Shown in pieces: positions 6 to 63,290 of a DNA stretch of 64,000 nt. A model generated the notes under the pieces. The model was not told the origin of the DNA, did no database searches, and worked only from the letters and a program-made list of their open reading frames with translations. Where the stretch lies: positions 558,001-622,000 of the forward strand of contig JBLDXI010000002.1 of assembly GCA_047495785.1 (NCBI GenBank), written 5' to 3'. This DNA is from Lepidodermella squamata. Lineage: Eukaryota > Animalia > Gastrotricha. Every line of letters begins with the position of its first letter. The stretch's first letter is position 1. Both the position numbers and the translations under genes were made by a program.

Positions 6-3000
6 CTGTTTCAAGGAAGACTTTAGTCGATTTGTTGTCATTCGGCTCGCATAGGAACGCCTTGACTTTGAATGAAAATAAATTTTCGTCCAGCAACGAT
101 TCCTGTTTCGAGTTCTCTAGGCCTGTGATCTGCGGGAGATCGGGCACAACAGCTTTGCGTGGAGCTACTTTCTTGTCGGTTTTCTCATCCGTCTCAGTCT
201 TAACAACAGTTTCAGCCGTAGTTGAAGCTGCAGCTGTGGTTGTAGTTGCTTCGGTGGTCAGACAAGTCCGTTGGCACTCGGCCTCTTCCTTGAAGAGTTT
301 CAGGCCTCGAATACAGCCGCCGTAGTTGTACTCTGTGCATTTACCGCTTTCAGTATCGAAGTAGTACCTGTGGCGTGGAGTGGAAAATAGCAAATGCTTT
401 TTCGGTGAGAACTTGGAAATTTACATGAGAATAGTAGCACGGCAATCCTCGACATCTTTAGCGACAGGCGCTTTCCAACCAGAGCACTTATCGGTGCAGT
501 TGAATTCGTCGAAGTCGTTTTTGCAGTCGCCGTAGAAGCCATCGCATCGTTCTGAAAACATGAAAGAAATGCCTTGAAACATCAGCAATGTCAATCTAAT
601 TTAAGTTTCAAAAAATTTTAAATCTTTCTATTTTTTCAAATTTTCAAATTTTCCTGAAATTTTCTGAAATTTCCTATATTCTCAATTTCTTTGTATTTTT
701 CCTAATTTTTCTGATATTTTCCAAATTTTTCCAATTTTTTCTTGGAATTTAATGGAACTTCAGGAACGTCACCTCGTTTTCATGGAAGAGAACTTTAATT
801 TAATTAATTAATCAAACAAAGCTGAGTTTGCAATCACTTTAGAAATTCCACGCAATAACTTGGCATATTTCTAAAATTTTATAAAAAATTCTAAATCTTT
901 CTAAAATTTCAGAAAATATCCTGAATTTCTCCACAATTCAAACACGATTTCTAAATTAATAATTAATTAGTTACTAATCTGTTTAGTTAATTAATTTAAA
1001 ATTTGAAATGAAATGAATTTTTTAAATCAAGCCAACAGGGACATTTCTCCGGGCAAATATTTGCTCGTAATAAATCTTGACTTTTTTGTTTCATGTGAAT
1101 TTTACCTGTGTCAAAAACCACTTCGTGCGACATTGGGTTCTTCGGATTGCAGCGGAACAACTTCTTCTTCTCAACGATAATTTTACCATTTTCGTCCATG
1201 CTCATGACATCCGACATGTCGTCAAAGTCTTCAACAAACACATTCAGGAAATCATCGAGCGAACCTTTGCGAGAAGCTACTTTCCTGTCGCTTTTCTCAG
1301 CCTTTTCATCAGAAGCAGAACTTGTGGCGGTGAAAGTCTCGGTTTTCAAGGTCGTAGCTTCGGTCGTAGTTTCAATATTCTTGACCTCATCAGAGTTGAC
1401 AGCGGAATTCTTAATCTCGTTGGATTCAACCGGCTCCTTGTAGAAGAATCCGTCGCATTCAACCTGGCACTCGTCGGCCGTTTTGAACATGTTCGTGACC
1501 TTGGCACAACCGCCGTACTTGAATTTCTCGCACTTGCCCGATTCGAAGTCGTAGTAGAACCTGGGAATTGAGGCGCGGCATTCGCGGAAATCGTGACGGG
1601 TCGGGTAGCGCCAGCCCTTGCATTTTTCGCGGCAGTTCTTCTCGTCGGCGCCGTTGTCGCAGTCGTACCGGCCATCACAGCGGGCTTAAAAGTATTTGAA
1701 AAAAAATTTCACAATTATTTTCTACTTTGGAGTGACAATTTAACGGAATATGCCTAGATTCCTTTATAGGGGAACATATATTTCTGAAAATTCAGAACCA
1801 TCAGGAAATTATTGTGGATATTTTATTCAATTTTTTCTAGGATTGCTGGGGCAAAAGGGTGCTCAGCAGCAGCTTCAACCCCGCATTCAAATTGAAAATA
1901 ATTTAGAAAATTTAAAAATTTGGATTTTAAAATTCCAGCATTTTTTCAATATTTAATGTTATTTAATGTTATGATTTTTACAGTTGGGGCGATTTTAAGT
2001 AGGTTCCAGAAAAAATTCGGGAAATAAAGACAAAACCGCGTGAAATTGTGCAGATTCGGAGATTCGTGAATTTCAAACAAAATATTTTTTTATAGGATAA
2101 TGTACCTTCCGGGAAGTAGAACATGCCGGGCACAGTGGTATCGGCTTCGGTGAAAGTGGTCTGTCCGAGGCACGAAATATTGCCAAACGGCTTCACTGGT
2201 TCGATAGTAGTTGTTTCCTCGCCATTTCCAGGCGAAAGATCGATAGTTTCGAACTCCAAGGAATCGTCGCCAGTGAATTCGCGCTTCTTTTCTTCGACTG
2301 TTTCTGTAGTAAATAGATCAGAAAATGAGGAATTCGAATCCATCCGAAAGATTCGGAGCTTTTTATCAGGGCGTCCATAAAACTCACCTAGATGGCTGAG
2401 ATCACTTGGACTTGTAAAATTCCTGGCAAAATCAGGAGACTTTCCCTAATTTTCATCAAGCTGAATCCAATGTTCGGGACCTTTGAGGTTTCCTGAGCTT
2501 TTTCCAACCCCAATTTCATGTTTTTCCCAGCAAATCCCAAGTTATCTCAGCCTTCTAGGTGAAATATGATTCTTACTCAATTTTAAAAGGAGAATATTAC
2601 GGTGGAAAATTTTTGAATGTTACATAACCGGAAAGCCGCTCAAGCTTTTTTGAAAAAAATTTAAAATTTTTATTTGAAATTCCTAAACATTTCAATAATT
2701 TTTAAAAGGTTTCACCTTTTTTGCAATTGCCAGCGTAGGTCCACTTGCCGTCCTCGGTGCAAGTCGCAAAATCGTTGCCCGTCATAACGTAACCAGCTAA
2801 GCATTCGAACTTGCGAGTGCTGCCAACCGTGTCCTTGCCGTCGAAAAATTTCTGCCCATCAAGCACTGTCAACTCGCCACATTTTATTTCTTTCAAATCT
2901 ACAAGTAAAAAATTGAAAATAAAAAATGAATGAGGAATAATTAAAATTTCAGTTCAAATTTGAAGTATTTTTTATTTTTTTGTTTAGGAAATTTCGAATT

Positions 3001-3143
3001 TATTTAAATTTCAAAAATTAAAAACCAAAATTTCAATTGAAAACTTTCGAAAATGCAATAAAAAATGGAATTTGATGCATACCTTGAAGATTGGCCGATA
3101 CGCTCGCGACCATGAAACAAAAACCCAACAACTTGGCGACCAT
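6..3143 (-). CDS. Secreted Sushi-(LDLa-Kunitz)n protein, gene A; 3' end runs off the window. Exons 3143-3083, 2898-2716, 2303-2106, 1684-1106, 551-425, 367-6
   Basis: Signal peptide MVAKLLGFCFMVASVSA. Sushi exon (CGELTVLDG...FECLAGY..TC.EDGKW...C). LDLa halves RCDGRYDCDNGADEKNC and RCDGFYGDCKNDFDEFNC, each followed by a Kunitz domain (CRASIPRFYYD..GKCEKFKYGGC..VTNMF..ECQVEC). Thr-rich linkers. All junctions GT-AG with compatible phases. Confidence 0.85.
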
Positions 3144-5156: not shown

Positions 5157-8100
5157 TCACATCAGAATGTGACGCCTAGCCTTCGAAGCGGTGGTCGATT
5201 CAGTTGTAACGGTAGTTTCAGCCGAGGTTGAAGTTGCGGTCTTTTCGGTGGTTGTTTTGGCGGTCAGGCAAGTTTGCTGGCACTCGGCCTCTTCCTTGAA
5301 GAGTTTCAGGCCGCGACGGCAGCCGCCATACAAGAACTCTGTGCACGTTTGGGTTTCAGTATCGAAGTAAAACCTGTGGCGAGAAATAAAATGGTGAAAA
5401 TTGTGTTTTAGCGATAAGAGTTGGAAATTTACATGCGCTTAGCAGCCCGGCATTTCGAGGGAGTCTTAGCGTCGGGAGCTTTCCAGCCAGAGCACTTTTC
5501 GGTGCAGTTGAATTCGTCGAAGTGATTTTTGCAGTCGCCGTAGAAGCCATCGCATCGTTCTGAAGTTAAATCAAATTAAGAGATAAGAGAGCTGAACTTA
5601 GCAATCGTCTCAAGATTTTAAGCAACGTTTTAGGGCGTTTTTCTACAATTTTCTGAATGATTTCCTAATTTCCCCAAATATGATAGAAACCAGAACGAAT
5701 CCAGATCCAACTAATCCTTTTGACGTAAAAGGATTGGTTCCGCGGTCTTAAAAAGTGGATTAGCGATTTTTAAATTATCATATAATTCAAAAAATGTCCC
5801 AAAATTCAAAAAATTGTCCTTAATTCAACGGCGGTTTTGACACCGTTCACCACGATTTTACGGAAGAATGTGAAATTCATCTGAGAAAACCCGTCAATTC
5901 CCAATATGATTGATTTGAGAATTTTCGGAATTTTCCAAATATTCCAATTTCATTTACAGTAAGGGTAATAACCAGAACCATGAAATTCTCAAAAAATTTC
6001 CAAAACTCGAAAAATTCACAACCTTACTAGCAACCATCATCTCATTCCAAAAGTTCAATCAAAGCAATCGTCAGTTTATAATTTGAAATCAATCATGAAA
6101 TTATTGATTTTGAATATCGAATATCGATAACAAAAATGTCAAACTCGGGGTAAATAGGGCATTTTCACTCTAAAAAAATAACATAATAGGGACAATTCTC
6201 CGTGCAATACTTCGAAACAACTGGCTCGATCATAAAATAAAAAATTGAATTTTACCAGTGTCAAAAATCACTTCGTGCGACCTTGGGTCCTTCGGATTGC
6301 ACCGGAACAACTTTTTCTTTTCGACGATAATTTGACCTTTTTCGTCCATGCTCATGACACTGGACACGCTGCTGTCGAAGTCTTCAGTGACGGAAGGGAG
6401 GAAACCCTTCGAACCATCGAGCAAAATTTTGCGTTGACCTACTTTCTTGTCGCTTTTCTCATCTGTCTCAGCCTTAACAACAGTTTCAGCCGTAGTTGAA
6501 GCTGCAGCAGTGGTTGTAGTTGCCTCGGTGGTCAGACAAGTCCGTTGGCACTCGGCCTCTTTCTTGAAGAGTTTCAGGCCACGAATACAGCCGCCGTACT
6601 TGTACTCCTTGCATTTACCGCTTTCAGTATCGAAGTAATACCTATACGAAGTGAAGCATGAAAAAATGGCTGTTATATAGTAAAAACTGGGAAATTTACA
6701 TTAGAATAGCATCCTTGCAATCCTCGACGTCCTTAATGGCAGGGGCTTTCCAACCAGAGCACTTTTCGGTGCAGTTGAATTCGTCGAAGTCGTTTTTGCA
6801 GTCGCCGTAGAAACCATCGCATCGATCTGAAAATTAAATTAGATTGACAGTGCTTATTTTAAGGCATTTCTTTCCATTTTCTAACATTTCCATGAATTTC
6901 TAAAAATTTCCTGAAATTTATGAAATTTTTATTCTCAATTTCTATAATTGTTTCCTAATTTTTCTGATATTTTCGGAATTTTTCCTTGAAATTTGACGGA
7001 ACTTAAGGAACTCAAGGACCGAACCGCGCTTTCATGGAAGAGAATTTGAAATTTCCCGGAGAAAATCAGTTCAATTCTATGGGTGATTAATTCCAGAGTT
7101 TTATGGGATTTCAATTTCAATTTTTTCAAATTTACGTAGAACCTAGATGTAAATATTAGGAGCTACTTTACCTAATAATTTTCTCAAATTCTAGTTTCCG
7201 GTATTTTTGGTAATTAATTCATCTCATTACAAAAGAAATAACAAAATTTTACCAATATTTAATCAACAAGAATTTTGAAATCAACCACCAATGCCGAATA
7301 AAAATACAATTTTAGGGACATTTCTCCGTGCAAAACCTAGCTAAAAATTAGCTGGATCAGTTTGGAAGTTCAAAAGCCGATAGAAATTAGAATTTGAAGT
7401 TTACCTGATTCGAAAAATAGTTCGTGCGAATATGGGTTATCCAGATTGCACCGGAACGTTTTCTTCTTCTCGACAGTTATTTTACCATTTTCGTCCATGC
7501 TCATGACATCCGACATGCTGTCGTCAAAGTCTTCAACAAAGACATTCATGAAATCATCGAGCGTAGCTTTGCGAGACGCTACTTTCCTGTCGCTTTTCTC
7601 AGCCTTCTCATCCGAAGCAGAAGTCGCGGTGGTAAAAGTCTCGGTTTTCAAGGTTGTAGCTTCGGTCGTAGTTTCCACATTCTTGACCTCATCAGAGTTG
7701 ACAGCAGGGTTCTTGACCTCGATAGATTCAACCGAGCTCCGATCACTAACCGGCTCTTTGTAGAAGAATCCGTCGCATTCAGCCTTGCACTCCTCGGTCG
7801 TCTTGAACATGTTCGTAACCTCGGCACAGCCGCCGTACGTGAACTTTTCGCACTTGCCGGTTTCGAAGTCGTAGTAGAACATGGGAATGGCGGCGCGGCA
7901 GTCGACGAAATCGTGACGGGTCGGGTAACGCCAGCCCTTGCACTTCTCGCGGCAGTTCTTCTCGTCAGCACCGTTTTCGCAGTCGTAGCGGCCATCACAG
8001 CGGGCTGGAAAAAAGTCCAAGTTCAACAATTTTTTACTCAATTTTGCGAAATATTTGTAGATTCAATTGAAGGCAAACAAGTTTTTGAAATTACGGAGCA

Positions 8101-9425
8101 ATCAGATATCAATTTTGCATTTTTTATTCAAATTTTGAAATTTTTCATTTTTATTTAATTTTTAAAAATTTTGAAATTTTATTTTGAAATTTGAAATTTT
8201 TTTAAATTAAATTTTCATTAATTTTGAATTTCGTTAAATTTTAGAAATTTTGAATTTTTTGAAATATACCGAATCTCTAGCAATGATTGCGACTGATTTT
8301 CCAGAAAAATTCAATATCAATCAAGGACTAATTCGGGAGAATAATTACAAATAGCTGTGCAATTTTGCAGGTTTTCCCTAATTTTATGACAATTCGAAAC
8401 ATGATTTTGGGCTCAGGATTTGTACCTTTCGGGTAGTAGAACATGCCGGGCACAACGGTATCAGCGACAGAGTAAGTGGTCAGTCCGAGGCACGAAATGT
8501 TGCCGAACGGCTCAACCGGTTCGACAGTAGTTGTTTCGTCGCCATTTCCAGACGAAAGATCGATCGTTTCGAACGGCTCCAAGGTATCGTCGTCAGTGAA
8601 TTCGCCCTTCCTCTCTTCAGCTGTTTCAACTAAAATAAATGGGTGAGAAAATGTGCAATTCGAGTCAATTGAAGATCCTGAGCTTCTTACCTGGGCGGCA
8701 GTATGGCTTCCCAGACCATTCGCCGTTTTCGGCGCAGATGATAGTGGCTGTTGCTCCGGCGACTTCATAGCCATCTTTGCACGAGATGGTAACAGTTGAG
8801 CCGAATTTCTTGGAACTGGAACCATCGATGATGAAACCATAGGCAACCTTGTCCCAGACTGGGCAATCTAAAAATTAAAAATTATAATCAATTATTGATA
8901 ATTCAAAAATAAATTAAATTTTGAAAATTATCGAACATCTTACCTTTTTTGCATTTCCAGCTCGCTTTCCAAGCTCCAGCTTCGTCGCATGTTTTCGTGT
9001 ATTCGAAAACTGATTCGCCCTCGTTACACGTGGGCGGATTCGGAGCGGCGATCGAGTCGCAAGGCGACGCGGCCTTTTTAATGCAATTGCCGGCGTATGT
9101 CCACTTGCCCTCCTCGGTACAAGTTGCGAAATTATCGCCAGTCAGATCATAACCAGTTAAACATTCGAACTTGCGTGTGCTGCCAACCGTGTCCTTGCCG
9201 TCGAAAAATTTCTGGCCATCAAGCACTGTCAACTCGCCACATTTAATTTCTTTCAAATCTGCAAGTAAAAAAAATTTAAATTTAAATTTAATTATGCGAG
9301 TTCATTGAAATTTAAAAAATTTGAAAATTCAATAAAAAACTAGAAAATGAAATCTCATGCATACCTTGATGATTGGCCGATATACTCGCTACCATGAAAC
9401 AACAAAGCAACAACTTGGCGACCAT
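5157..9425 (-). CDS. Secreted Sushi x3-(LDLa-Kunitz) x3 protein, gene B, tandem paralog of gene A. Exons 9425-9365, 9258-8944, 8867-8691, 8629-8426, 8004-7405, 6826-6700, 6641-6256, 5559-5433, 5373-5157
   Basis: Signal peptide MVAKLLLCCFMVASISA. Three Sushi-like units (the second is shortened). Three LDLa-Kunitz modules with P1 R, K, R. TGA at 5157-5159 and AATAAA about 100 nt downstream. Confidence 0.88.
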
Positions 9426-9953: not shown

Positions 9954-10449
9954 TTAGGCCTTCAAAATCAGGTATAATGGTAAAATAATGCTAAGAAAAG
10001 TCATTTCGGGTCCAAATGCTTGAATTTTCGAGCCGGAATTGCACAAATTGCCAGTGCAGCAGTAGATGCTAACGAGGCGGTCCAAGGTGGGCACGCATGA
10101 ACTGGCGCATTGCCGATGCACGTTGTAGTCGATGTAGTGCCAGACGATTTTTGCACAGTAACTCTGAACGGAACTACAATTAAGCCCATACAAATTGGCT
10201 TTGTTCGACGATTGACAATTTTGACAGCTAAATCAAGGTGAAAAATAATTATAAAAAAATTCACCCATTTAAAAAAATCATGAATATTACCTGTAGCACT
10301 GTTTCAAAACCGAGACGTAAAAAATTGAGAAATTTTAATCTAAGTGATTTTGGATATTAAAAGAAAATGTTTACCTCCAAGCAATATGTCATTTGGAAAA
10401 TTGAGAGCAGCGATAATAATGTCGAGGTCAAGCGGTAATTTTGTTCCAT
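9954..10449 (-). CDS. Ly6/uPAR (three-finger) GPI-anchored protein with an 8-nt microexon. Exons 10449-10375, 10298-10291, 10227-9954
   Basis: Splices to MEQNYRLTSTLLSLLSIFQMTYCLE-CYS-CQNC...CCTGNLCN plus a hydrophobic tail. Ten Cys of the LU domain. Confidence 0.75.
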
Positions 10450-11081: not shown

Positions 11082-11432
11082 TTATTTTACAAGAATAATT
11101 AGGCATATTAGGAGAATAATATTGGTTAATCCGAATAATGATTGGTTATCAGCTTCATTGCAAAGATCAGTTTGGCAGCAGTTGATTTCGAAGAAGCCAT
11201 TTTTAAACGGAGTGCAGGTGACAGCACACGATCGGCTGACAAAGTAATCAATGAAGCGGAACGTTGTCTTGGCGCATATCGTCTGAGCAGTCCCGCACGT
11301 TGTGTTCTCGAGCAACGAAGGCGTTTTCACCTTGCAATTGCTGCACGAGTAGCATTGAAATGCGTCCGTCAAGCTGTTGAACGAGATGAGTATCACTAGG
11401 ATGGCGAAAAGTGATGGTGGTAACAACCGCAT
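11082..11432 (-). CDS. Ly6/uPAR (Quiver/CD59-like) GPI-anchored protein, intronless CDS
   Basis: Signal peptide, FQCYSCSNC...CCQTDLCN, hydrophobic C-terminus. Confidence 0.9.
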   Translation of the reverse strand: MRLLPPSLFAILVILISFNSLTDAFQCYSCSNCKVKTPSLLENTTCGTAQTICAKTTFRFIDYFVSRSCAVTCTPFKNGFFEINCCQTDLCNEADNQSLFGLTNIILLICLIILVK

Positions 11433-12667: not shown

Positions 12668-13063
12668 ATGGCGTCTATAATCGTTTTCATCGCTCTCATC
12701 GCTGTTTCCTGCATTGCAATGACAGGTAAGTAACGTCGCTTAAACAGAAATGCTGTACCAAAAAGCCATTATTCATTTTTTATTTTAGCCGCAGAGGGTT
12801 ACACCGGCTACAAACTGATGCCTGCTGATGAACAGTGTTATAGGCAAACAGCGGAAAAGTTCGTGGGTTATGGCGCCGATGCAGTTGCTTCAGAAGAGCA
12901 ATGCGCCGCAAGGTGCTTAAGGGACAGCCAATGCGATGCATTTGGCTTTCATAAACTCGAGTCTGCTGAGCCACTCTGCAATTTGTGGCACAATTGCACT
13001 GACATAAAAGACTCAAATGGCTACCCTGTGTACATGAAGCTCCCCCTTGTTGATACTAACTGA
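12668..13063 (+). CDS. Small secreted PAN/Apple-domain protein. Exons 12668-12725, 12789-13063
   Basis: Signal peptide MASIIVFIALIAVSCIAMT. Motif SEEQCAARCLRDSQCDAFGF...CNLW with 6 Cys. AATAAA downstream. Confidence 0.8.
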
Positions 13064-14978: not shown

Positions 14979-15320
14979 TCAGAACTTAATCATGTAAGCA
15001 AGGCAGGCCGCCAGCAGGAAGATGGCCATCGAGTTAATCGCCGGCTCGAACGCAACCCCAGTATTGCAAAGATCCGTCTGGCAGCACCCAACAGTTGCTT
15101 GGTCGTTTTCGGTCGCCGTACACGAGCTGGCGCAAGATTTCGACAGATACCCAGTTTGTTTGATGTACGTCAGCGAGCAGTAGGGCTGAATGGCGGAGCA
15201 GTTGGCGTAGAGTGTCTCATTTTTCTGGCAATTGGCGCAGGAAATGCACTTGAGCGCGTCGACGCCGTTCGGCAGCACGACGGCGGCCAAAGCAGCGATG
15301 CAGGCGATAATTTTGAGCAT
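14979..15320 (-). CDS. Ly6/uPAR GPI-anchored protein, intronless CDS
   Basis: Signal peptide, LKCISCANC...CCQTDLCN, hydrophobic tail. Confidence 0.9.
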   Translation of the reverse strand: MLKIIACIAALAAVVLPNGVDALKCISCANCQKNETLYANCSAIQPYCSLTYIKQTGYLSKSCASSCTATENDQATVGCCQTDLCNTGVAFEPAINSMAIFLLAACLAYMIKF

Positions 15321-16210: not shown

Positions 16211-16555
16211 TTACAGTGCCCACATTGCCGCTACGGTAACCAAGATTAAGGCTGAGCTGTAGCTGGTAACCGGCGAAGAGTTGCACATATCCGTCTGGCA
16301 GCAGTAAACGTTCAAGTTGTCGGAGGTGGAAGCAGCGCAAGAAACGGCACAGCTTTTCTGCATTATGCCAGTTGTTTTGAAGTCGAAAGTAGCGCAGTAC
16401 TTCTGGTCAGTCGTGCAGTTGATGCTCGCTATAACGGTTTGGTTAGGTTTGCAGTTGGCGCAGGACAGGCAGCTCAAGCCATCGGCGACGTTCGATAGAG
16501 CGATAGCGAGGACGAGTCCAGCGATTGCGCTAATAATGTACTTTCCCACGGCCAT
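16211..16555 (-). CDS. Ly6/uPAR GPI-anchored protein, intronless CDS
   Basis: Signal peptide, LSCLSCANC...CCQTDMCN, hydrophobic tail. Confidence 0.9.
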   Translation of the reverse strand: MAVGKYIISAIAGLVLAIALSNVADGLSCLSCANCKPNQTVIASINCTTDQKYCATFDFKTTGIMQKSCAVSCAASTSDNLNVYCCQTDMCNSSPVTSYSSALILVTVAAMWAL

Positions 16556-26064: not shown

Positions 26065-26851
26065 AATTCCAAAATCGAACTTTAGTAATTGTAATTACCA
26101 TGTTTTCAAGAGCTTAATTTGATGTTTTTTGTTGGTTGATTCCATGCTGATTTGAAAAGTAAAACTGCTTGGAATTCAGAGTTTGATTGGTCTGAAAATA
26201 TCGATTTATAACTTTTGAATCATTTATTGCTCGATACGGATGCACCATATTTTTATTTTAGCTAATGGGCGGATACATTGGGAATGTTGGCGCAAAATCT
26301 TTCTCATATCGGAAAAATCACTGATTTGTAAAATCGATAGATAAGATCGATATCGGCTCTACAGGCTGAAGTTTGACCGATAAAATGACCGTTCATAACG
26401 CAAATTATGCGTAATATTAATATCTATTTGCTGGCATGATAATGAACAGTTCAGGGATCCAGGAAAGACGGGAAACTCGTAAAAACCATATTTTAGGAAA
26501 ATATATTGTAAGAATCCTAAATTAAGTGTGCGCACCTTGCAATTAATTGAATTTTGTTCAAGTCTCTAATAATTGAATCCTAATTATTTGCCGATTTCTT
26601 GCCCGTTTATAATCATTTTCTGTCTGGTAACTCATTATAGCATCAAAATGTCAATCGAAAGTGTTATAAAAACCCATTTTATTTTTAAAATCAGGCGAGT
26701 TCGAACAGTATTCAGGTCATTTTGTAGTTAAATTCGACTCGCCGATCTGAACCGGCTCATCATCACATTAAAATCGGCTTATATAAAACGAGTAGAAAAT
26801 TGGCCCGAGAGAGATGCAAAGATAAATCAAGCAACAAAGCGAAAGTTTTTC

Positions 26852-34539: not shown

Positions 34540-34798
34540 TTAGGTCTTCACGTTCACAAGGGTGGGCTAGGTTGCCGCTCTGGCATTGCAATTATTCCAG
34601 AGATTGCAGTCACTAATTGTAAAACGATATCTTCCTGTCGTAACCTCACAGGTCGTCCAGACAAATGCTCTGCAATGTTAGTTCCTCATGCACTTTTGGT
34701 TGCACACGCTTTCCGTAGGGGAAAAGTGGTCGACGAACGGAGCGATGAAACAGTGGCCATTGTCAGGCATTAGTTTGAAGCCTGGGTAGCCCTCTGCG
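34540..34798 (-). pseudogene. PAN/Apple pseudogene, inverted duplicate of the 35275 gene
   Basis: AEGYPGFKLMPDNGHC..CNQKCMRN*HCRAFVWT..DCNLWNNCN..T*. In-frame stops at 34678-34680 and 34567-34569. Signal-peptide exon absent; homologous 3'UTR present. Confidence 0.85.
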
Positions 34799-46358: not shown

Positions 46359-49300
46359 TCAAAAGATTCGTCTGAAAATATGCGGCGACCGGAAAATCTT
46401 AGTTTTATGCTTGTTCGACGCGTATTTCTCGCCCCGCCACGCCAGCCAAGCATTCGCGATAGGCACCTGAGTGCCAGCTCGAAACGCCGCATCAAACACA
46501 TCCTCGCCGTCATGATTCGTCACATTCATCTTCGCCCCATTGTCCAACAACCATCGAAAAACCATCGCATTGCCATTGCCAGCCGAAGCCATGAGTGGCG
46601 TGTTGCCTTTCGAATCCGCAAAGTTCAAATCCATACCTTTCCCCTTCAAAAACTTCAATTCGTCCAACCTCCCGTTACCAGCAGCGAAGATTACAGCATT
46701 TTCGCCATTGCTGTTCACGACATTCATATCAGCCCCGTTTTCCAATAGAAACTTCGAACAGTTCAAATTGCCTTGGGCAGCCGAAATGATGAAAGGCGCA
46801 TTTGCCCCAGTAACGCCGTTGACTTTCATTCCTTTGTCGAGTAACAGCTTCGAAATCGAAAAATGGCCCTCTCCACAGGACATAGTCAACGCATTTTGGC
46901 CATCAATCAACGAGCTATCAATACTGGCTCCTTTTTCAAGCAGAAAATTCGTGAGATCTGAGTTGCCCTTACGACTCGCGACCATCAAAGCTGTGACATT
47001 GCGGCGATCTGCGACGTTTGGATCAGCTTTCCGTTCGAAAAGAGCCCTGACAAAATCCATGCGGTTAGTTTCCACAGCCAGCATCAACACAGTCCCGCCG
47101 TCCTTAGTTACAGGGCCGTCGATCGGAGCCCCGTGATCGAGCAATAGTTCCATAATTTTCAGATTCTGAGCGATCCCGCAAGCTAGGCTAAGCGGGGCCT
47201 CGCCAAATTTGTTGGTAGCATTAGGACTGGCGCCTTTTTCCAGCAGAATTTTCACTAATTGGGTCGAGTTTTGATAGACAGCGGTTATGAGAGGATTCCG
47301 GCCGTAGAAATCCCCAGCGTCTACATCAGCCTTGTTTTCCAGCAATAAGTTGACGATGTAGGTATTGTTGTTTGAATTCACGGCTTCAAGAAGTGGTGTT
47401 ATCATCCATTTAGCTCTTGCGTTCACATTCGCGCCTGATTGGATTAACAGACGTAGAATGTCCGATCTTTGCCTTTTTACAGCTATGTAAAGAGCTGTCT
47501 CTTCGTTTTTATCTCTAGCCTCAAGATTCGCGCCGTGGTCAATGAGAAATTTTACGATATCCAAGTTTCCGAGTTCAACTGCATTTAACAGTGGGGTTTC
47601 GCCATCCTTGTCCGAGAATTCGACGTTGATTGAGCCGGATTGCAATAAATCCTCAAGGGTTTGAGAGTCTCCGTTAATCGTAGCATTGAGAAGCCTGGCA
47701 TGCCTTCCAGCAACCTGTAAAAGGGCAAAAAATACTTAAATTCTATGGAAAAACCCAAAGTTGGATCCGCTAAAAGAAAAATCCCTGAAATCACACAAGA
47801 ACCCCAATATATCACAGGAAACAATGAGTCTCTCAGTACATTTTTCAAATTTTTCAGTTCGAACTTTCGAAACTCACCCTTCTGGAGCTTTCGAGCTCGT
47901 CTGATATGCTGCTGTTCAACTCAATCAATCCATCAATGATTTCCAAGATATCGCTGGTATTCGCGAGCTTCTCCACCTGATCCAACTTTGCCCCATTCGC
48001 CAGCAACTCCGAAGCCACTAAGCCCATCTGCTTCTCCACTAGGAAAAAAGTATAGCTAATTAGCTATTTCCATTTAGCCAAGGCTAGCTAAAAAACCTAG
48101 GCTATGCCTCAGCTTATTATCAGCTAAAAAGCTATAGCTAAATAACTATCGATAGACTGCGACTGGAAGCATGCGGCGTAATAAAGTTACACAACAATGG
48201 CTGTGACCCTTTCTGATTACTACTCGAAGCTGCATTCCATTCGTTTTTCATCCATACACACAGAAGCAAAAAATAGTTTTTTTCACCACTTAGTTCTCAA
48301 AATGCTACGACTCCAGCAGCGCGGCAGGCCACAAGCAGTTTTTAATGGAATAATTTCAAAATGAGTTTGCGCCATGTAAGTAGTGCCAACGACTCACCTA
48401 GTAATTACTTTTATCAATCGCCTTTTTCTATTTTCTCAAAAATTTGGGAAAAATCAGAATAATTGCCTCCAGCCAGCACGAGCTTTATGATCTTGCCTAA
48501 ATAACTAACTAACGCAGCGCGAAAAATAACAATTCAATTAATCGACTAACCTGAGGAGGCTCGTGTTAGTTAGAGGTTTCATTATTCAATACGTATTCCA
48601 TTATTTCATTTTATAATTCACGAATTTTGTTTAAGAATTTTTAATTGTAATTTTATTAATTTTGTATAAATTGCAGGTCATGCATTTAGCGGTGAACGCT
48701 CGGAAAATGCATCGGACGTAATTTACAGGTAAGAAGCTATTTTGAATTTAATCGATTAGCTTCCTTTCACGCAATTTTTTTATTTTTTTCAGGAGAATTC
48801 TGGTTACCTCAGTTGATGATCAAGACCATCGGTGTGCAATCCGTCATTGCTGGGTAAGAAGTAAGGATACCTGTATTTTTTGCTGAAATAAAATTTCAAT
48901 CTCGAAATTGTTAAAAATTCATACAATTAATTTTCAGTGATTCGTTCATTTTTCCTGTTTTCGGACGTCAACCCCGAGCTATTAGCATCTGGGCAACTAT
49001 TTGAAATAATGGTAGTCACTCCTTTATTTTCTAGAAAATCAGATATTTTTTCATGCTGAAAATGTTTCATTGAACTTGATTGAATTGAATTGAATTTATT
49101 TGAAATTTTTCAAATTTTTAGGCAGGCTAAGCATGAATTTTCTAGAATTATTGTGGCCAATCTTGACCTGCAAGAAATGTCCATAAAGCGATTTCAGGCT
49201 ACTAGAAAATTCAAAAATTTGGTTCCGCTAACAGCAAATTTGGTTCCGCTGACATGAGGACCAAAAATAAAGCAATGTGAAATAATTTATAAAATATACA

Positions 49301-51048
49301 AATTTCTCAAAATTAAACCTGAAACTTGACTTTTTTGAAAATTTGAAATTTTTGAAAAAATTTGAAAAATTCTAGTGTTAAAAAAATTACCGAAAGTTAC
49401 TGAAATAACAAAATGCGATGTAATAAAATTGTTGGCACTTGGTGAAGCACCACCTGTAATTTCAAGTGACAAAATAAAAATTTTAAAATTTCAAAATTAA
49501 ATCAGAAAATTGAAAAAATTGTAATCCAATTCTTTTAGCGATTAACTCCTAAATATCTGAAAATCAATTTTAAATTTTTCGGAAAATTTTTCATGAAATT
49601 TAAGAAGGGTGTCCTAACTCGTTCTCTTTATTCTTCAGATTGCACGCGACCTTTAAGTTCGAGAGGACATTCTACGCTGAAAGCATGGCCGTTCTCCTCA
49701 ACGCAAGCATCGACTGGCTCACCGAGCCGAAGTTCGCCCTAAATTGTTCAATTCGGGAAATATCTAGCAGCGAAATGGAACTTTTTTAAATAAATATTAC
49801 AATTACTACTTCATATTCGAAAAAAATCGGTCTCATTCGAGGTCAAGTATTCTCATACTGTGAATTATCTTTCGAAAAATTCGAAGACATTTTTCGCCGT
49901 GATGAAATGTGCTGGCAAATATTTTGTTATTTGTGATTCAGTCTCGACTGTTCTCGTTTTTTACCTGTTGAATACTTTTATAAAAATTGTTTTGAAATAA
50001 AAATGACGAAGACGCTGAAATTTCATGTTTTATGAATTGAAATTGAATAAGAATATGGGGGAAAGGGGTAGGGGGCTGGGTGCGATTCTAGCTAATAAAC
50101 CATGAGCTTATTAACTTTCAGGCCAAAAAGAGACATCGCGCAATGTGCAACAGCTGTGATAAACAAGAATTCCATGCCGACCCACCACTCGCTCGGAGCC
50201 TAGCTATTTAGCCATTCATGGGTTATTAGCTTCCCTGAATTTAGCTGAAATAGCTAATTAGGGGGACATAGGAGGGGTTATTAGCACTCTTGGTCCTTGG
50301 GTTTATTAGCTAGCTAATAAACTATACTTTTTTCCTAGTGTCAACTGCGACCATCAGAGGGGTGTAGCCTCTGGAATCAGTAGCCTCAAGATCTGCCCCG
50401 TGTTTGATTAGGCTCCAAACAGATTCCAGACTTCCAGCCTCGGCCGCGAGGAATAATGGCTTGTCCTCATTAGGATCAGCCCCAGCCTCTAGCAGCAAGT
50501 TAACCAGATCGATGAAACCGAATTTCGACGCGAAAAATAGAGCTGTGTGATTTTCGTGGTTTTTCGCATTGATATCAGTGTCAGTGAGCAGTAGAAGCAG
50601 CTTAACTCGGTGCTTGTACCGATAGAAAACCGATTCGATAAGTCGCTCGCCTAAACGCTGAGCTGTCACGTTAACAACAATGCCTTCTCTGCCTAGGATT
50701 TGCCTGATGCAAGAATTGGCCGAGTCGTTACAGTTGCGGAGGTATCGAATCCACGGTTGATCGTTAGGCTCCAATGTCTCAGCGCCATTTTCTACCAGAA
50801 ATTTTACAACATCAGGCTTTCGATGCCGAATTGCAAGCTCCAGGACTGACGTAGCATTTTTGGTACCCGGGGACGCTAAAAATTGTTTCAGGGCAGAGAA
50901 ATCTTCCTCTACAACAGCTCTCAATGCATCATCTAAATTGAAAAATCTCAGTGTTGATGAACATTTTGAAAGTTTCCTGCTTACCGGAGGAACTGGCCGA
51001 AATTAGGCCGAAGAGTATAATAAATATGGCTTGAGGATTTATCAGCAT
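46359..51048 (-). CDS. Signal peptide + long ankyrin-repeat protein (~722 aa before insertion), interrupted by a CACTA element. Exons 51048-50985, 50932-[TE 50340-48037]-47878, 47714-46359
   Basis: Leader MLINPQAIFIILFGLISASS; more than 15 ANK repeats. Removing the TE and one TC copy restores GYTPLMVAVEKQMGLVASELLANGAKLD in frame. As written, the TIR supplies a TAG stop at 50322. Confidence 0.8.
48037..50340. mobile_element. Non-autonomous CACTA (CMC superfamily) element, 2,304 bp
   Basis: Perfect 19-bp TIR CACTAGGAAAAAAGTATAG, 2-bp TSD TC, and subterminal TAGCTA repeats at both ends. Confidence 0.92.
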
Positions 51049-53179: not shown

Positions 53180-53582
53180 TACTACGATCATTGACGCTTC
53201 AACTCAGCCTTGCTGTCCTTCTTGTGTCACATGCCATCGCAGCGTATCAAATTCTCGGTTTCGAATATCAGGTATGAGAAAAATCAGGATTTACTAGCAA
53301 TATTAGTTGAATCTGTTGAATTCGCAGGCTTACCCTGGCCTCGGCGATAGATCAAGCAACTATTTCCTCGGCGAAGACGCTGAAGCTGTACAAAAAGTAA
53401 TATGGCTGGAGTGCTTGGTAATGTGTGGGTACCGAATACATATTACGGTTGATTGAACGTTTTTCTGCTCACTTTTTCAGTTGAATTCATAATTGCTCTG
53501 ATCATAGCGAATCTCTTCTGTTGTTGTTATACCTGTTCGATCCTGTTTTCAATAAAACGTTATATAACGGATTTTCTAAGCA
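53180..53582 (+). pseudogene. Internally deleted tandem copy of the 54117 Sushi-ankyrin gene
   Basis: Exon 1 homolog with the ATG lost (ACTA--CG vs ACTATGCG) and an exon 2 homolog. It then jumps to the last codons (NVWVPNTYYG*) and the 3'UTR matching 56263-56420. Confidence 0.8.
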
Positions 53583-54116: not shown

Positions 54117-56297
54117 ATGCGTTCGTTGACGCTTAAACTCAGCCTCGCCGTCCTTTTAGGGGCAAATTTCATCGCTGCGTACCAATTTCTCGGTTTCGAA
54201 TATCAGGTGCGTGATGAATCATGATTTACTGGTAGTCCTTTATATGGATTTTATTTAAGTCACAAGCATTCGGTGGTCTCGCTGAAAGATCAAGCAGCTA
54301 TTTCCTCGATGAAGGCCTTGAAAATGTAAGTTGTTTCCTCACTAAAATGTATCATTTTAAGATAATTTCGAGTTTGGAGATATCGACAAATTTTGAGATT
54401 AAATGAATTTCTCAATTAATCTATAAATTAACCTGCCAATGTCCTATCTGATGAATATGTGATAAATACAGGACGCAAACATGGTTCCTAGCTTACTATC
54501 GAAGGTAAGAACATTTTAAACTGGATTTACAGTAAAACAAACTTTCATTATTTCACCAGGCCGTCGTGCAGTGCAGAATTCGTAGCGGTTCGAGCGCTAA
54601 TGGCCTGTTAATCAAACTCAAATCCGACAGTGCAAGACCTACGTTCTTACCAGTTCGGCGGAAAACCTTCTCCGGCGGGGCAGTTGTGCAGATAACTTGT
54701 CCCGAGCCCGGTGCATCTCCTCAGACGAGTACATGCCAGCTAGACGGAACTTGGGAACCAGAGCTGATACTGCCTTGTCCACTGGTATGGCGTGGGAGAG
54801 AATTGTACCCGCTAAATTAATTTATCTTGATTTTCAGCGAGTGACAAAAATCGAGTATGAATATTGCGAGGAAACGCCAGATGTGCAGAACGGCCTGGTA
54901 AGTGAAGGCAACAGCTCTGTAGGTTCGGTTCGAAGATTCGTTTGCGACTACGGCTATCAATTGTCGGGCAATGGATGGGTCACGTGTATTAACGACGGAA
55001 GTTGGAAAACTGATGGCAGATGCGAAGCTAAAGACAAAACAGTACGAGTGAGTTTTCTTGAAAGCATGCGATAAACCAACAATATGTCATGAGCCTGCTG
55101 AGAACCCAAAAGAAATTGCGGCGAATTTCATTAAAGCATGGGAAAAAGCGAATTTCGAAGTTATTAGGAATAATTATGCAACCAATTGCCTTTCATTCAA
55201 TTTTCCGTTCATTTTATCCAATCACTCGAATACAGCAGACAGCGAAGTGCCTCGTGCTGCTGATTTCGAATGAATGAAAAGGTATTCGAGTTTAATATCA
55301 TGGCAGGCAAACTCCAGTGTAAAATTTTCTAGCCCCTATCCATGCAAAAGCCAAAAAGTGGCGAAAACGATGATTTTTGTTCTTGACAGAATCAGTGTGG
55401 AGATACTCCAGCCATTGCCAACGGCGAAGTATCTAGCAGAGGAGGGAATTTATTTGGCTCATCAAGGCGCGTAATTTGTGATCCCGGCTTCGAGGTGCAG
55501 GGCAAAGGTGTCATTACCTGTGATAACGGTGGATATTGGACAGTACACGGCATCTGCATGCAACAGAATCAGAATACTGGCTTCGTAGTAACTTCAACTA
55601 CAACAGTGAGAAAAGTGATCTTTATTTGGCAGATACCTAATAGAGTTTTATTCCATAGCCTGAAATGTTAGCGAGTGTTTCACCTAAACCTAACCCGTCG
55701 AACCTGTGGAACGCAATCATGAACGACGACCTAATTGGGGTTCAGCGAGCCATTGAAATCGAGCGTATTCCAATCGAAGAACGTGATTCTACCGATGCAA
55801 GCCCGCTATTGATTGCAGCACGACAATGCAACCCGGCGATAGTTTCTTACCTACTTCAAAAGGGCGCAGATTCTACGGCGCAGATTCGTATCCCCGGCCA
55901 AGGTTCAACTGGCAGTACCGCAATTTACCTCGCAATTTATGTTTATTCGACAAATAAGGTTTTGCGATATAGATGCTACGAAACTTTGGGAATTCTGGCT
56001 AGAACTCCGGGTGCTCATTTTGTTATACTGAACTCGCAAATGATGTACAGTAACCCTATCACCTTTGCAGCTAACTACGGTTTGGTGGATATAGTCAAGC
56101 TATTAATAGCAAACGGCGTCAGCATAAATACAAGGCTTCCTGATGGGTGGACGGCTTTGATGCACGCTGCAGCGGGTAACGAAGTTGAGACCGTGAACTA
56201 CTTGCTATCTGCTGGAGCTGATCCGAGGGGATGCACGTCAGCCTTATGCAGTGGAACGCAGAGCAATGTGTGGGTACCTAATACACATTACGGTTGA
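54117..56297 (+). CDS. Signal peptide-Sushi x3-ankyrin repeat protein. Exons 54117-54206, 54260-54325, 54472-54504, 54560-54784, 54838-~55047, 55390-55605, 55659-56297
   Basis: Leader MRSLTLKLSLAVLLGANFIAA. Three CCP units (e.g. CEETPDVQNG..FVCDYGYQLSG..TCINDGSW..C). About 4 ANK repeats (SPLLIAAR, GWTALMHAAAGN). No TM segment; phase-0 introns. Confidence 0.8.
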
Positions 56298-57223: not shown

Positions 57224-57500
57224 ATGGCAAATCATTTCTGGCTACCGGTTGTTGCAACTTTTCTCCTTGTGACCCTAGCTTTCTTCCAAGTCGCCGGTAT
57301 GTTTCGATTGATACCGAATTTCCCCTTAATTTCTTATCTTTACTGCTGGTCTAGATGCAATCAATTGTTGCGCTCTTTTCGACTTGACATGCTGCTGTAA
57401 AGACGCTGACGATGACATTCGAGTTGGCGTTGCGGCTGGCATTGCTGCGATTCACCATTCGTGCGACGGCGGTGGCTGCCATTACGGATGGAGGTGCTAG
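57224..57500 (+). CDS. 72-aa secreted cysteine-rich peptide. Exons 57224-57296, 57355-57500
   Basis: MANHFWLPVVATFLLVTLAFFQVADA-INCCALFDLTCCCKDADDDIRVGVAAGIAAIHHSCDGGGCHYGWRC*. 58-nt GT-AG phase-1 intron after the signal peptide; AATAAA at ~57582. Confidence 0.72.
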
Positions 57501-59167: not shown

Positions 59168-62100
59168 TCAAGTCCGAACGCCGAACGATCGGTGGTGGCC
59201 AGCCGCGGCGAAGGCAACGTCGGCCATTTTCTGGCCCAGCATATTTTTACTGTCCACTTTCGCGCCTCGAGTCATCAGCAGCTTGAACACGCTGGCTTTA
59301 CTCTCGGCAGCCGCCGCCATAATCGCCGTGTTGCCCTTGGAGTCACGTGACTCGATGTCGATGCCGCCGTGGCGCAGCACGTAGTCGACCATTTCGACGT
59401 TACCGCCGCGCGCCGCGACGAGCAGCGCGTTTTCACGCTTTTTATTAGTAGCGTCCACCTTAGCGCCGTGGTCGATGAGAAATTTAGCGCATGCGACTGT
59501 GCCTTTGGCGGCTACGGCGAGGAAAGGCGTATTGCCAGCTGCGTCGATGATGGCATTCACTCCAGCTCCGTATTCTAGAAAAAAAACAAAAATAATCATT
59601 TTATTGAGACTGAATAATCTATTATTTGATTCTTTAATTGTTTTACTTTCTAACTGGAATTAAAAAGATGAATTTTGAGTCGAATTCGACCTCAGCTGGG
59701 TAGAGAAATTTTTAATATTGACTTTTGAGACTTCTGATATCGGAAAAATGACTGATTTGTAAAATCGATAATTGGAATCGATATCGGATCTTTAGGCTCG
59801 CTAACAGATCGGTGATGGCTTAGGAAATTTACCTAATTAAATTGGTGACCCACCGAGAGAAAATTCAATTATTTATCTGCGATTACACCGAGGAAATAAA
59901 TAATTTACTGGAGAAACCCCGAAAAAACCCGATTGTAACTTGTTCGGTTATTTTCGGTATTTTACCCGGCTGGACCAATTTATTTCTCCAGGCTTTTTAA
60001 TCCCATCAACAAGTAAAATACTTGATTACTATATTCTCGTGATTTTTTTAATTTTTCTAAAAATTTCCTGGCCGTGAGATGTGACTTCGTCTCTCATTTC
60101 AGAGTTCCGAGTTTTTCGAAGTTCGTATAACGCTGAATCAGCTTGAAAATCTATTCATAAGTTAATTATCAACTAGCTCACAGTTTAATGCAATAATAAC
60201 ATCTTCAAACTTCAAATTACTCCGAATTTTTGAAAATATGCGGGTCGATCTCGTTAAAAAAATGCAACTTGAGCTGGAATAAGGACATCAGGAATATATG
60301 CATATATCACCTTTCGCCTAATTTTTCCTGAGGAACTCGGTAAAACTCTGAGATCCTATTTCCCCGGAATTACCAATAGCCACAATATTAGAGAAATTAT
60401 TCAGAAATTAAAATGATGAAGCTACAAATATTGAGTAATTTATTTAAATAATCAGAAAAGTTTGAGATAGCCCGTAATCATTAATTGGAAATTTGGAAAA
60501 AATCGGGAAAAATGACACACCCTAAATTAGCTTTCGTCTATAGCCTATTGCCCCCACTCTTTCATTTTCGAATTTTGAGAAAACGTTAAGAAATCTTACC
60601 GATGAGCACTTTCGCAATATCGAACATGCCGCTAGAGCACGCCAAGGTCAACGCATTGTGGCCGCCCTGCACCGGCGCCACGTCGATTTTCGCGCGAAAC
60701 AGCACCAACAACCGCGTCATTTGCTTCAAATCCAACTTAACAGCCAGCATCAACGGCGTCACGCCCGACTGGTCAGCCACGTTAACATCAGCCGCTCGGT
60801 GCAACAACGCCTTGGCCGACCCGACTTTATTCTTCTCAACAGCGTAAAACAACGCCGTCCGGCCGTCGCTTTTCCGCCTCGCATTGATAATAGCACCGTG
60901 GGAGACTAGTGTCCAAATCATTTCGAAATTATCAGCAAGTGCCGCGAGAATTAAGGCGGAATTTTGCTGGTTGTCGAACCGGTTCGGATCAGCGCCGTAT
61001 TGGAGCAGAATTTTGACGAGAGCTGTCGAGTTTTGATAAGCCGCCGCGATTAAAGGCGTCGCGCCGTGGTTGTTCTTAGCCTCAGGATCCGCGCCGTGTT
61101 GCAGCAATAATTCCGCGATTTTCGTCTCGTTATTAGTCGCAGTTGCTAGGTACAGCGGCGTGTAGGAGCTCGAAGATTTGTGGTTGGCATCAGCGCCGTA
61201 GTCGAGCAAATGCCGGACTGTTTCGAAATCTTGACGCGTGACTGCGAAGAATAGGGCAGTTTCGCCGGATTCAGTTGCGGGTTCCGTGTCGGCGCCGTGG
61301 TCGAGTAGGATTGGCACGATGGCGTGACGGCCACGCTTGACTGCGCGAATCAGGGCTGTGTCGTCGTATTTCCAGGCGCGGAAGTCGATGTTGAGATCGC
61401 CCGGTTCGAGAAGAGCGGTCAGGGCGGTGATATTGCCGGCTGAGGACTTTTCCAACATTTTCAGATGCCGCTCATTTAGCTAATAAAAAAGTTAAAATTT
61501 ATAATTAATATTAATTCAATTATTGAAAAATGAAAAAATTCGAAAAACTCAAGAAAATTTAGAGAAGTTAATAAATCAATTAATTGAAATTAAATAATTA
61601 AATAATTGAAATTTCGACTTCCTGGATTTTGAAAATTCCTAATTAAAAAAAATTAAAATTTTAATGAAATTCCAAATTAAAAAATGAGAATTGCAATTCC
61701 AAATCTTAAAATTTTCCATTTGGATCAAAATTCAAAATTTCGAAATTAAATATAAAAAAATTCAACAATTCAAAATCCAAAATTGTAAATGAAATTGAAA
61801 TATTTCGAAATTTAGAACTTAGATTGAACTAAATTTGTGACCAATTTTCCAAAATGGAATTGCTTTTATTTATTTTTACCTTTTTAGCCGGTTCCAACTC
61901 ATCAGCCAGCTTTTCATCGACAGCAATTAGGACATTGATGATGTTGGCAACATCAGTCACCATGGCGGCTTCCATAACTGCGCCGACATTAGCGCCTTGA
62001 GACAGCAAGTAAGCCGCTGTTTTCATTTTTTCTTGCCTAGCTGCGGCGAGCAACGGCGTGAATTGACGGTCGTCTATCGCTTCGAGATTGGCGCCGTGTT

Positions 62101-63290
62101 GGGTGAGAATTTTAACAGCAGCTAACTGGCCTCTTGCCGCAGCCCAGGATAAAGCTGTATCGCCGCCCCATCTCTTAGCATTCACCTTATAAAAAATCGA
62201 TAAAAATTTGAAAATTTGATATATCGATTCCAAGTATCGATTTTAAAATCATTGATTTTTTCGATATCGATCAGGAAAAGAAAAATCAGAAATTGATAAA
62301 ATTCGGAAAATTCTGAAACAGGACGAGTTAGCGCTGGAACGTCAATATTAGTTCCATTAATATGGAAAAAATTGATGGAAAAATAAAAAAAAATGAATTA
62401 AATTTGGGACACTTATTGGGAATGCTTTCCAACCTTTTAAACAATTATTTTAATTTTTCTTTGATATGAGCTAAGATTTGAAAAATTAGAAAAATTCTGA
62501 TTGGGATTTTCATAATTTTAGCTTAATTGCTCACCTTAGCGCCGCAATCGATAAGCATCTGAACAGCCGCAACTTGACCCCGAGAGGCCGCCATCATTAA
62601 GGCGGACCAATCGAACGCATTTCGCGCCTCCAATTTCGTCTCAGGCAGCAACAGCAGCAGGCGCAGTCGCTTCAACTTGCCGTCATTGGCCGCCTCCATC
62701 AACCGCGTCCATTTCGCCTCGTTTCGTTCCGCGATGTGGCTCTTCTCGAAATTCACGCCGTCTTCGATGAGAATTTCGCGAATCGTGGCGACCGCGTCTT
62801 TTGACCCAGATTTCGCCAATTCTTGCGCCCATGTAACGTCAAACTCCTCGCGAACTTTGGCGCCTTTTTCGAGAAGAATTTTCGCGAAAGCTGCGTGGCG
62901 GCGTTTCAGAGCCCAGTCGAACGCGGTTTGGCCGTTTGCATCAGCGTGATTGATATCACCAGCGTTCGGCTGATCGAGGTGGTCCTTCAAATCGGCCGAG
63001 TTACCAGTTTTGACAATTTTGATCAGTCGAGCGTGCCAATCATCTAATTGGGTCAAAAAAGCAATAAGTTATTAAGCGGATCTTTTTAAATTTTCTAAAA
63101 TTAAATCAGAATTTAAAAATTCAATTTCAATTTTCCAAAATTGTTTAAATTTAATTCAAAAATTTAAATAAGCGAAATTTGTTAGCCAAATTTATTCGAA
63201 ATTTGCGGGAAAATATTGAAATTTTTTACCTGCTGCTGAAACCAATCCAGCTAACAGAAGAAGGATACACAAGTGCATAGTCTTGCACAT
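59168..63290 (-). CDS. Signal peptide + long ankyrin-repeat protein (~720 aa), paralog of 46359-51048. Exons 63290-63230, 63043-62535, 62185-61880, 61479-60600, 59574-59168
   Basis: Leader MCKTMHLCILLLLAGLVSAA; more than 15 ANK repeats. Exon lengths sum to 2163 nt in frame. Shares the spacer (..DELE..KK/RR|) and intron position with the paralog. Confidence 0.85.

Follow-up and report, generated by a model that had tools for sequence, protein, structure and literature searches.

Tandem Kunitz domains with canonical cysteine spacing from C14 to C55 are known from the inhibitors SmCI, boophilin, TFPI and bikunin, and the extracellular protein HAI-1 (SPINT1) joins Kunitz domains with a basic P1 residue for trypsin-like proteases to an acidic Cys module of the LDLa type. 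CD59-type and insect Ly6 proteins consist of a leader, a ten-Cys three-finger domain ending in CCxxDxCN and a C-terminal signal of the glycosylphosphatidylinositol (GPI) type. Insect Ly6 genes occur in clusters. To our knowledge, animals normally keep ankyrin repeats in the cytoplasm; repeats outside the producing cell are found in α-latrotoxin and in bacterial and oomycete Ank effectors. Here, we describe a stretch of 64,000 nucleotides (hereafter the window) from the gastrotrich Lepidodermella squamata (assembly GCA_047495785.1, contig JBLDXI010000002.1; C2:558001-622000 in our numbering), in which genes of these domain types are interleaved with PAN genes. Our results suggest that the window is probably a neighborhood built by duplication, whose extracellular proteins act independently, and not a single functional unit.

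The assembly comprises 121 Mb in 151 contigs, and the GC content of the window is about 40%. After stop-to-stop open reading frames (ORFs) displayed family signatures, Pfam scans on exon ORFs supported Kunitz, Sushi, Ly6/Toxin_TOLIP, PAN and ankyrin domains, an LDLa domain in Ank1, one zf-C4 domain and a hAT/DUF4371 transposase. Genes were modeled with a splice-aware dynamic-programming finder trained on Pfam-confirmed ORFs, with a fixed ATG and a bounded region for each gene. When run freely, the finder merged adjacent genes into giant models, and this mode was therefore not used. The 21 host gene models comprise seven Kunitz (K), five Ly6/uPAR, three PAN and four ankyrin genes, one nuclear receptor and one Cys-rich peptide (Table 1). 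Database searches used single exons as queries rather than spliced proteins. Exact-sequence look-ups of the window proteins gave no match, and no RNA gene was detected by Rfam and a tRNA scan.

A leader, consisting of an N-terminal hydrophobic stretch and a small-residue cleavage motif, is present in 18 of the 21 models: K1, K2, K4, K5, Ktr, K6, K7, Ly6b-e, PAN1, PAN2, Ank1, AnkB, S3Ank, AnkA and the Cys peptide. The models lacking it are the nuclear receptor and the pseudogenes Ly6a and PAN3. A hydropathy scan of all 21 models found no internal transmembrane-like segment; leaders aside, hydrophobic stretches occur only as the GPI-type tails at the C-terminus of Ly6b-d. The first-pass annotation of this DNA had counted leaders in 19 of about 20 genes and described a dense, interleaved run of unrelated secreted or surface families. 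The leader count was essentially right, and Pfam together with our models finds the five families at the places it had given.

Splicing and transcription were assessed with contigs from three public runs, placed on 6 kb of the window (22500-28499). Two of these, runs X2 and X3, behave as whole-organism cDNA: a SMART adaptor, GT..AG joints and a poly(A) end are present. The gene models recovered exactly each of the six GT..AG introns that these contigs define; they are three of the four introns of Ank1 and three introns of K4, for which the poly(A) site was also found. Transcription was seen for three genes, Ly6e (cDNA contigs cover its exon 2), Ank1 and K4, which contig depth cannot rank.

We then propose a model for the origin of the window. 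At least five unrelated secretory-pathway families would each have been multiplied here by local tandem or segmental duplication, and long divergence under purifying selection would have followed, with occasional gene death and transposon insertions. Every gene would be its own transcription unit. The K family is predicted to encode secreted, mucin-stalked multi-Kunitz inhibitors of trypsin-like serine proteases, the Ly6/uPAR genes GPI-anchored three-finger proteins, and the PAN genes secreted single-domain proteins of about 90 residues. The ankyrin genes would encode ankyrin proteins with a signal peptide, in two cases also with CCP (and LDLa) modules at the N-terminus, and the ankyrin repeats of these proteins should sit in the secretory lumen or outside the cell. 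The fifth family would be represented by one Cys-rich peptide, an unverified candidate. The fusion of a half-LDLa motif with a Kunitz domain is confined to this locus within the genome, and a genome search found the Ly6 subfamily at this locus only, which indicates local duplication. Canonical Kunitz domains occur elsewhere in the genome, with at least 149 matches (352 candidates) and in many clusters.

Most of the paralogs are old duplicates under purifying selection and do not display venom-like diversification. By pairwise Nei-Gojobori analysis of the window paralogs, K1 and K2 are the sole young pair (81% amino-acid identity; synonymous divergence, dS, 0.32; ratio of nonsynonymous to synonymous divergence, dN/dS, 0.35). 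In all other pairs, identity is 35-53% and dS is either above 0.9 or saturated; dN/dS over the pairs is 0.30-0.49. The comparison of dN/dS among paralogs, which the first-pass annotation had named as a check of its effector reading, thus revealed no accelerated evolution of the kind that a venom or effector cluster would have.

Table 1. Features of the window, with positions counted from its first nucleotide.
Feature	Position	Strand	Description
K1	1..3143	-	Leader, Sushi, half-LDLa/Kunitz modules, mucin-like linkers; extends past the left end of the window
K2	5157..9425	-	737 aa: leader, Sushi, small Cys module, Sushi, three half-LDLa/Kunitz modules (P1 R, K, R), Thr/Ser-rich linkers
Ly6a pseudogene	9954..10250	-	Three-finger exon intact; leader exon without ATG, in-frame stop before it
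Ly6b	11082..11432	-	Single exon, 116 aa: leader, Ly6/uPAR domain, C-terminal GPI-type hydrophobic tail
PAN1	12668..13063	+	110 aa, 2 exons: leader, one PAN/apple domain
Ly6c	14979..15320	-	Single exon, 113 aa: leader, Ly6 domain, GPI-type tail
Ly6d	16211..16555	-	Single exon, 114 aa: leader, Ly6 domain, GPI-type tail
Ly6e	19367..23249	+	Exon 1 19367-19443 (leader), exon 2 22949-23249; intron contains hAT
hAT transposon	19765..22781	-	Intact: 792-aa DUF4371/hAT-dimerisation transposase, inverted ends, perfect 8-bp target duplication
Ank1	23938..26064	+	433 aa: leader, Sushi-like domain, full LDLa, Ser/Thr linker, ankyrin repeats, no transmembrane segment
K4	26664..29075	-	349 aa: leader, uncharacterised N-terminal region, one half-LDLa/Kunitz module (P1 R), Thr-rich tail
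K5	30299..31436	-	200 aa: leader, one half-LDLa/Kunitz module (P1 K)
Ktr	32975..33379	-	134 aa: leader and Ser/Thr-rich region only; truncated paralog of the K4 N-terminus
PAN3 pseudogene	34478..34806	-	In-frame stop; head-to-head with PAN2
PAN2	35275..35658	+	104 aa: leader, PAN-like domain
Nuclear hormone receptor (zf-C4)	37965..39288	+	384 aa, no leader; sole clearly non-secretory host gene
K6	40576..43226	-	452 aa: leader, uncharacterised N-terminal region, two half-LDLa/Kunitz modules (P1 Q, R), Thr-rich tail
K7	43997..45756	-	385 aa: leader, Gly/Asn/Gln-rich region, two half-LDLa/Kunitz modules (P1 K, R)
AnkB	46359..51048	-	Leader and ankyrin repeats; coding exon split by repeat element, both halves still open
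Non-autonomous transposon in AnkB	48039..50327		2.3 kb, 19-nt inverted ends starting CACTAGG; copies 80-99% identical on other contigs
S3Ank relic	53185..53581	+	Copy of S3Ank 5' and 3' ends, 75-81% DNA identity
S3Ank	54117..56297	+	About 490 aa: leader, three Sushi (first sub-threshold), ankyrin repeats, no transmembrane segment
Candidate Cys-rich peptide	57224..57500	+	72 aa: leader and 10-Cys mature part
AnkA	59168..63290	-	720 aa: leader and ankyrin repeats only, no transmembrane segment

All 11 K modules in the window share one template, in which the motif RC[DN]GxY..C...DE..C..KC is followed, after 12-13 residues, by C-P1-x14-C-x7-C-x12-C-x3-C. The Kunitz/BPTI profile PF00014 scored 32-47 bits against a cut-off of 21 in 11 exon ORFs, and a genome search gave matches at identical places. 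The last five cysteines have canonical Kunitz spacing in 11/11 modules; the first lies 12-13 residues before C14, not 8. The P1 residue is Arg in seven modules, Lys in three and Gln in one (Arg/Lys in 10/11), which is compatible with trypsin-like protease targets. The acidic Cys motif, with its three cysteines, covers only profile positions 21-37 of PF00057 and scores 13.4-18.4 bits against a cut-off of 24.1; by this measure it should not be called an LDLa domain. The Sushi domains of K1 and K2 (PF00084, 29-40 bits) are above the cut-off of 20.7. A third half-LDLa/Kunitz module of K1 lies in the left flank (L004:9329-9614). In K4, which is well represented in the whole-animal cDNA, a 924-nt intron found through a loose contig end contains a repeat. 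A stand-alone trypsin-like serine protease gene with a leader is located about 8 kb left of the window, near the Kunitz array (L004:621-1673, minus strand).

Secreted multi-Kunitz inhibitors gave the best profile matches to the K module (E 1e-30 to 1e-13), among them SmCI (4bd9), boophilin (2ody), TFPI and bikunin; HAI-1 (5h7v) was matched as well. The K proteins share with SmCI, boophilin, TFPI and bikunin the tandem arrangement and the spacing from C14 to C55, but their first Cys is displaced and each domain is fused to the acidic motif. The likeness to HAI-1 lies in the combination of an LDLa-type acidic Cys module with Kunitz domains of basic P1. Unlike HAI-1, the K proteins have no MANSC domain, PKD-like domain or transmembrane anchor; their half-motif falls below the Pfam threshold and is repeated before every Kunitz domain, and N-terminal Sushi domains and mucin-like stalks are added. 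An AlphaFold2 model of the K module was too poor for a check of disulfide pairing (mean predicted local distance difference test score, pLDDT, 42.6).

One relative of the K family, at 65% identity, was found in an ENA metagenome, and it was the only homolog returned for the K module. Since this gene keeps the order leader-Sushi-(half-LDLa/Kunitz)x2, the K architecture is conserved beyond this species. At this level of identity, the relative fits a housekeeping-type extracellular role better than that of an arms-race effector. A metagenome scan with the K module returned only canonical tandem-Kunitz and LDLa arrays from unrelated organisms. Synteny with the relative was considered and dropped, as a visual resemblance of the gene downstream of P0001 (contig L013) to a gene left of the window was unsupported by tblastn.

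The four ankyrin proteins all start with classical leaders and match only Ank, Sushi and LDLa profiles; no N-terminal domain of the α-latrotoxin type was detected in them. Ank1 carries the only full LDLa domain in the window (PF00057, 31.6 bits against 24.1, profile positions 2-35 of 37). Its Sushi domain (14.7 bits) and the first Sushi domain of S3Ank (17.1 bits) are below the cut-off of 20.7; S3Ank domains 2 and 3 are above it, with 36-38 bits. The first large exon of AnkA has at least 72 paralogous matches genome-wide (961 candidates). Against outside proteins, the same exon found nothing but generic ankyrin proteins (47% identity or less), and these matches are silent on secretion. At many loci of the genome, an ankyrin exon is closely preceded by a Sushi exon. 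Judging from these matches, the predicted secretory ankyrins of the window are members of a large genome-wide family.

Four paralogous models elsewhere in the genome extend this architecture: at C4:319001-326000, C81:29001-37000, C85:124001-133000 and C73:269001-276000, a leader is followed by trypsin, one to three Sushi domains and ankyrin repeats, with a C-terminal Cys and no transmembrane segment. These predicted proteins come from the same custom finder; the model at C4:319001-326000 is clean, with 4 exons and 752 residues. The predicted location of the window ankyrins outside the producing cell is what they share with α-latrotoxin and the bacterial and oomycete effectors. They differ in being the animal's own genes with classical signal peptides, in lacking the latrotoxin N-terminal domain and any type IV secretion context, and in that the secretory ankyrins of this genome sometimes carry CCP, LDLa or trypsin domains in front. 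Like complement/MASP-type CCP-serine proteases, the genome-wide relatives join trypsin and CCP in a predicted secreted protein; however, the order is reversed, with the protease before the CCP modules, and the C-terminal ankyrin array is not known from complement proteases. Neither such a cluster nor secretory ankyrins of animals turned up in literature searches, and the few matching papers concern microbes or latrotoxin.

The first-pass annotation had derived the window from one small domain kit. Our genome counts show that this kit is not local: with about 600 Sushi, 350 Kunitz and 960 ankyrin candidates, these modules rank among the most frequent in the genome. The best non-self Sushi matches of K2 and of S3Ank are on other contigs and not in each other's family, so that K and ankyrin Sushi domains are not closest relatives. 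Local shuffling of Sushi exons between K and ankyrin genes is ruled out by these matches. Because Sushi-ankyrin loci are moreover found genome-wide, the window ankyrins would not have arisen by exon exchange with the Kunitz genes. Of the two domains said to be shared by the Kunitz and ankyrin families, Sushi is indeed common to both (below threshold in Ank1 and in S3Ank domain 1), but LDLa is not, as the K proteins have the half-motif.

The idea of fast birth and death also holds in part. There are two pseudogenes, duplicates and transposon insertions, but apart from K1/K2 no duplication is recent. Decay extends beyond the two pseudogenes to the AnkB exon split by a 2.3-kb element, the truncated Ktr and the S3Ank relic. 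Several families of miniature inverted-repeat transposable elements (MITEs) lie in introns and spacers. A palindromic repeat of about 190 bp (13563-13756 and 39804-39993; also L008, L011, L018 and L019), which matches itself in both orientations, is a MITE family found on several contigs. A second repeat family, of about 290 bp (71-80% identity; 3465-3751, 30556-30862, 58703-58922, 59821-60106 and L004:9661-9871), sits in introns of K5 and AnkA and upstream of K1.

The Ly6 genes have a ten-Cys pattern with a C-terminal CCxxDxCN. Toxin_TOLIP (PF00087) scored 21.5-29.8 bits against 21.2 in all five, and UPAR_LY6 (PF00021) was above its cut-off in Ly6b alone. The tandem genes resemble CD59-type and insect Ly6 proteins in domain and leader and, for Ly6b-d, in the GPI-type tail. 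The Ly6c query detected no homolog outside this genome; in this the subfamily differs from CD59, and a complement-regulating function is not inferable for it. An intron directly after the leader (..KCY|S..) is common to Ly6a and Ly6e. Introns are missing from Ly6b, Ly6c and Ly6d, and this points to intron loss or a retrocopy origin within one tandem family.

The Ly6e intron contains the sole full-length copy of the hAT element in the assembly. At least 40 short elements, spread over many contigs and with measured spans of about 250-930 bp, match the two ends of this hAT (37 bp and 64 bp) at 89-97% identity. The hAT probably serves as the autonomous master of a MITE family. Destruction of Ly6e by this insertion was considered and ruled out: the element lies in a true intron that Ly6a also has and need not disable the gene, and the joined exons form an open frame of 125 codons.

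PAN1 is above the Pfam cut-offs (PAN_1, PF00024, 23.1 against 21.4; PAN_2, PF08276, 23.7 against 21.1). PAN2 alone falls below threshold (PAN_4, PF14295, 19 against 27) but is 46% identical to PAN1. PAN1 thus passes the thresholds of the PAN/apple-domain family, from whose other members the window proteins differ in being minimal, single-domain proteins of about 90 residues. The family occupies four loci in the genome, almost all on one contig, and the PAN1 query found no homolog outside the genome. About 140 nt upstream of the PAN start codons (12531-12667 and 35138-35274; also L002 and L008) are 76-82% identical in DNA, compared with only 38-46% for the proteins; this stretch may be a family-specific promoter.

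Whether the clustering itself is meaningful can be estimated roughly. Since tandem copies are not independent, the raw 18/21 overstates the significance; counted by independent families (five secretory, one not), and with roughly 20% of genes taken as secretory, a few such windows would be expected by chance among about 1,900. Against a functional unit, moreover, both strands carry genes of the window, every gene has a start codon of its own, and the nuclear receptor sits in the middle. In the flanks, surface-protein arrays (Cys-loop channels, leader-ankyrin, trypsin, CBM1-bearing channels) are mixed with cytosolic genes such as dynamin. When 7- and 8-mers were counted over the 300 nt that precede each of the 18 leader genes, the most frequent ones were AT-rich, with counts within the null of random 300-nt stretches, so that this weak test found no shared upstream motif.

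Several observations weigh against a mere neighborhood of independent genes. The four main families also occur together, within about 20 kb, at a second locus of the same contig, 370 kb from the window (C2:185-205 kb). Its members are a leader-ankyrin gene, a gene for a leader followed by three Kunitz domains, a head-to-head PAN pair and a Ly6-like gene. Such co-occurrence is unlikely under independent placement, and a rough estimate for a Kunitz gene adjoining a PAN pair is p ~0.02-0.03. In the window, the families are interleaved and do not form clean blocks, and the upstream k-mer test that argues for independence is weak. At C2:185-205 kb, the PAN leader hardly differs from the leaders of PAN1 and PAN2, and the PAN pair is head-to-head like PAN3/PAN2. 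An old block duplication or a functional linkage behind this likeness is a lead, not a result.

One possible functional linkage is that Kunitz inhibitors, CCP-ankyrin binders and CD59-like Ly6 proteins work in one co-regulated pathway, as an extracellular protease-control or innate-immune-type locus. The recurrence of the four families at C2:185-205 kb would fit such a pathway, as would the basic P1 residues, the trypsin-like gene beside the Kunitz array and the leader-trypsin-Sushi-ankyrin family, which links proteases, CCP modules and secretory ankyrins within single proteins. However, no shared upstream motif was found by the k-mer test, the K family has no specific relationship to the Kunitz gene of the second locus, and the partner families are all missing from a third PAN locus (C2:418-423 kb). 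The domain types are also so abundant that some co-occurrence is expected, and we consider a coupled locus rather unlikely. It is tempting to speculate further that the window and its partial twin form a lineage-specific extracellular system, in which leader-, CCP- and trypsin-CCP-ankyrins would serve as binding modules outside the cell, half-LDLa/Kunitz mucins as protease regulators and Ly6 proteins as membrane partners of an innate-immune-like or surface-recognition cascade. We hold this to be quite unlikely; if true, the cascade would rest on repeats that are normally cytoplasmic in animals.

The mucin-type Thr/Ser-rich linkers and tails of the K proteins, together with the good representation of K4 in whole-animal cDNA, could also suggest structural or protective matrix components of an eggshell, integument, adhesive or gland secretion, in which mucin-like Kunitz and PAN proteins are deposited together. 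Among invertebrates, proteins of the cuticle and the eggshell commonly contain PAN and Kunitz modules. Secretory ankyrins and GPI-type Ly6 proteins are not well suited to a matrix, and we consider this account of the window very unlikely. Least probable of all, and in our judgment highly improbable, is the idea favored by the first-pass annotation, an island of venom, predation or host-interaction effectors. Kunitz, three-finger and ankyrin folds recur in venoms, and nearly every gene has a leader. This idea is countered by the dN/dS values and the mostly ancient paralogs, by the absence of a latrotoxin-type domain from the ankyrin proteins, and by the GPI-type tails of the Ly6 proteins, which point to membrane-bound proteins rather than shed toxins. 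What stands of the earlier interpretation is a dense run of predicted secreted or GPI-anchored gene products marked by duplication, gene death and transposon insertion; the idea of a co-expressed effector, venom or defense cluster assembled from one local kit is weakly contradicted by the selection, domain-distribution and motif tests. Together, these considerations leave a duplication-built neighborhood of independently acting proteins as the reading that we favor.

Some further genes stand apart from these families. The zf-C4 match of the nuclear receptor is weak, at 31 bits, and Pfam finds no ligand-binding domain in this protein, which looks divergent and lineage-specific. For the Cys-rich peptide, neither a paralog in the genome nor a Pfam match was found; this orphan is a candidate and may not be a real gene. 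At the C2:185-205 kb locus, a plant-type S-adenosylmethionine-dependent carboxyl methyltransferase (PF03492, E 5e-37; L002:3336-4340, plus strand) and a SIS-domain protein (L002:7896-8540, minus strand) lie amid animal genes, and both may have been horizontally acquired.

As a cluster, the window is mainly an example of secreted-protein families piling up by local duplication, which is of use for annotation and unsurprising. Two of its components merit follow-up. The locus-restricted and strictly conserved half-LDLa/Kunitz module would represent a new inhibitor architecture, nearest to HAI-1. The other is clear evidence, in part from cDNA, that ankyrin-repeat proteins of this animal enter the secretory pathway, either by themselves or with CCP, LDLa or trypsin domains before the repeats, as members of a large family. 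If these ankyrins indeed act extracellularly, the known uses of this repeat in animals would be widened.

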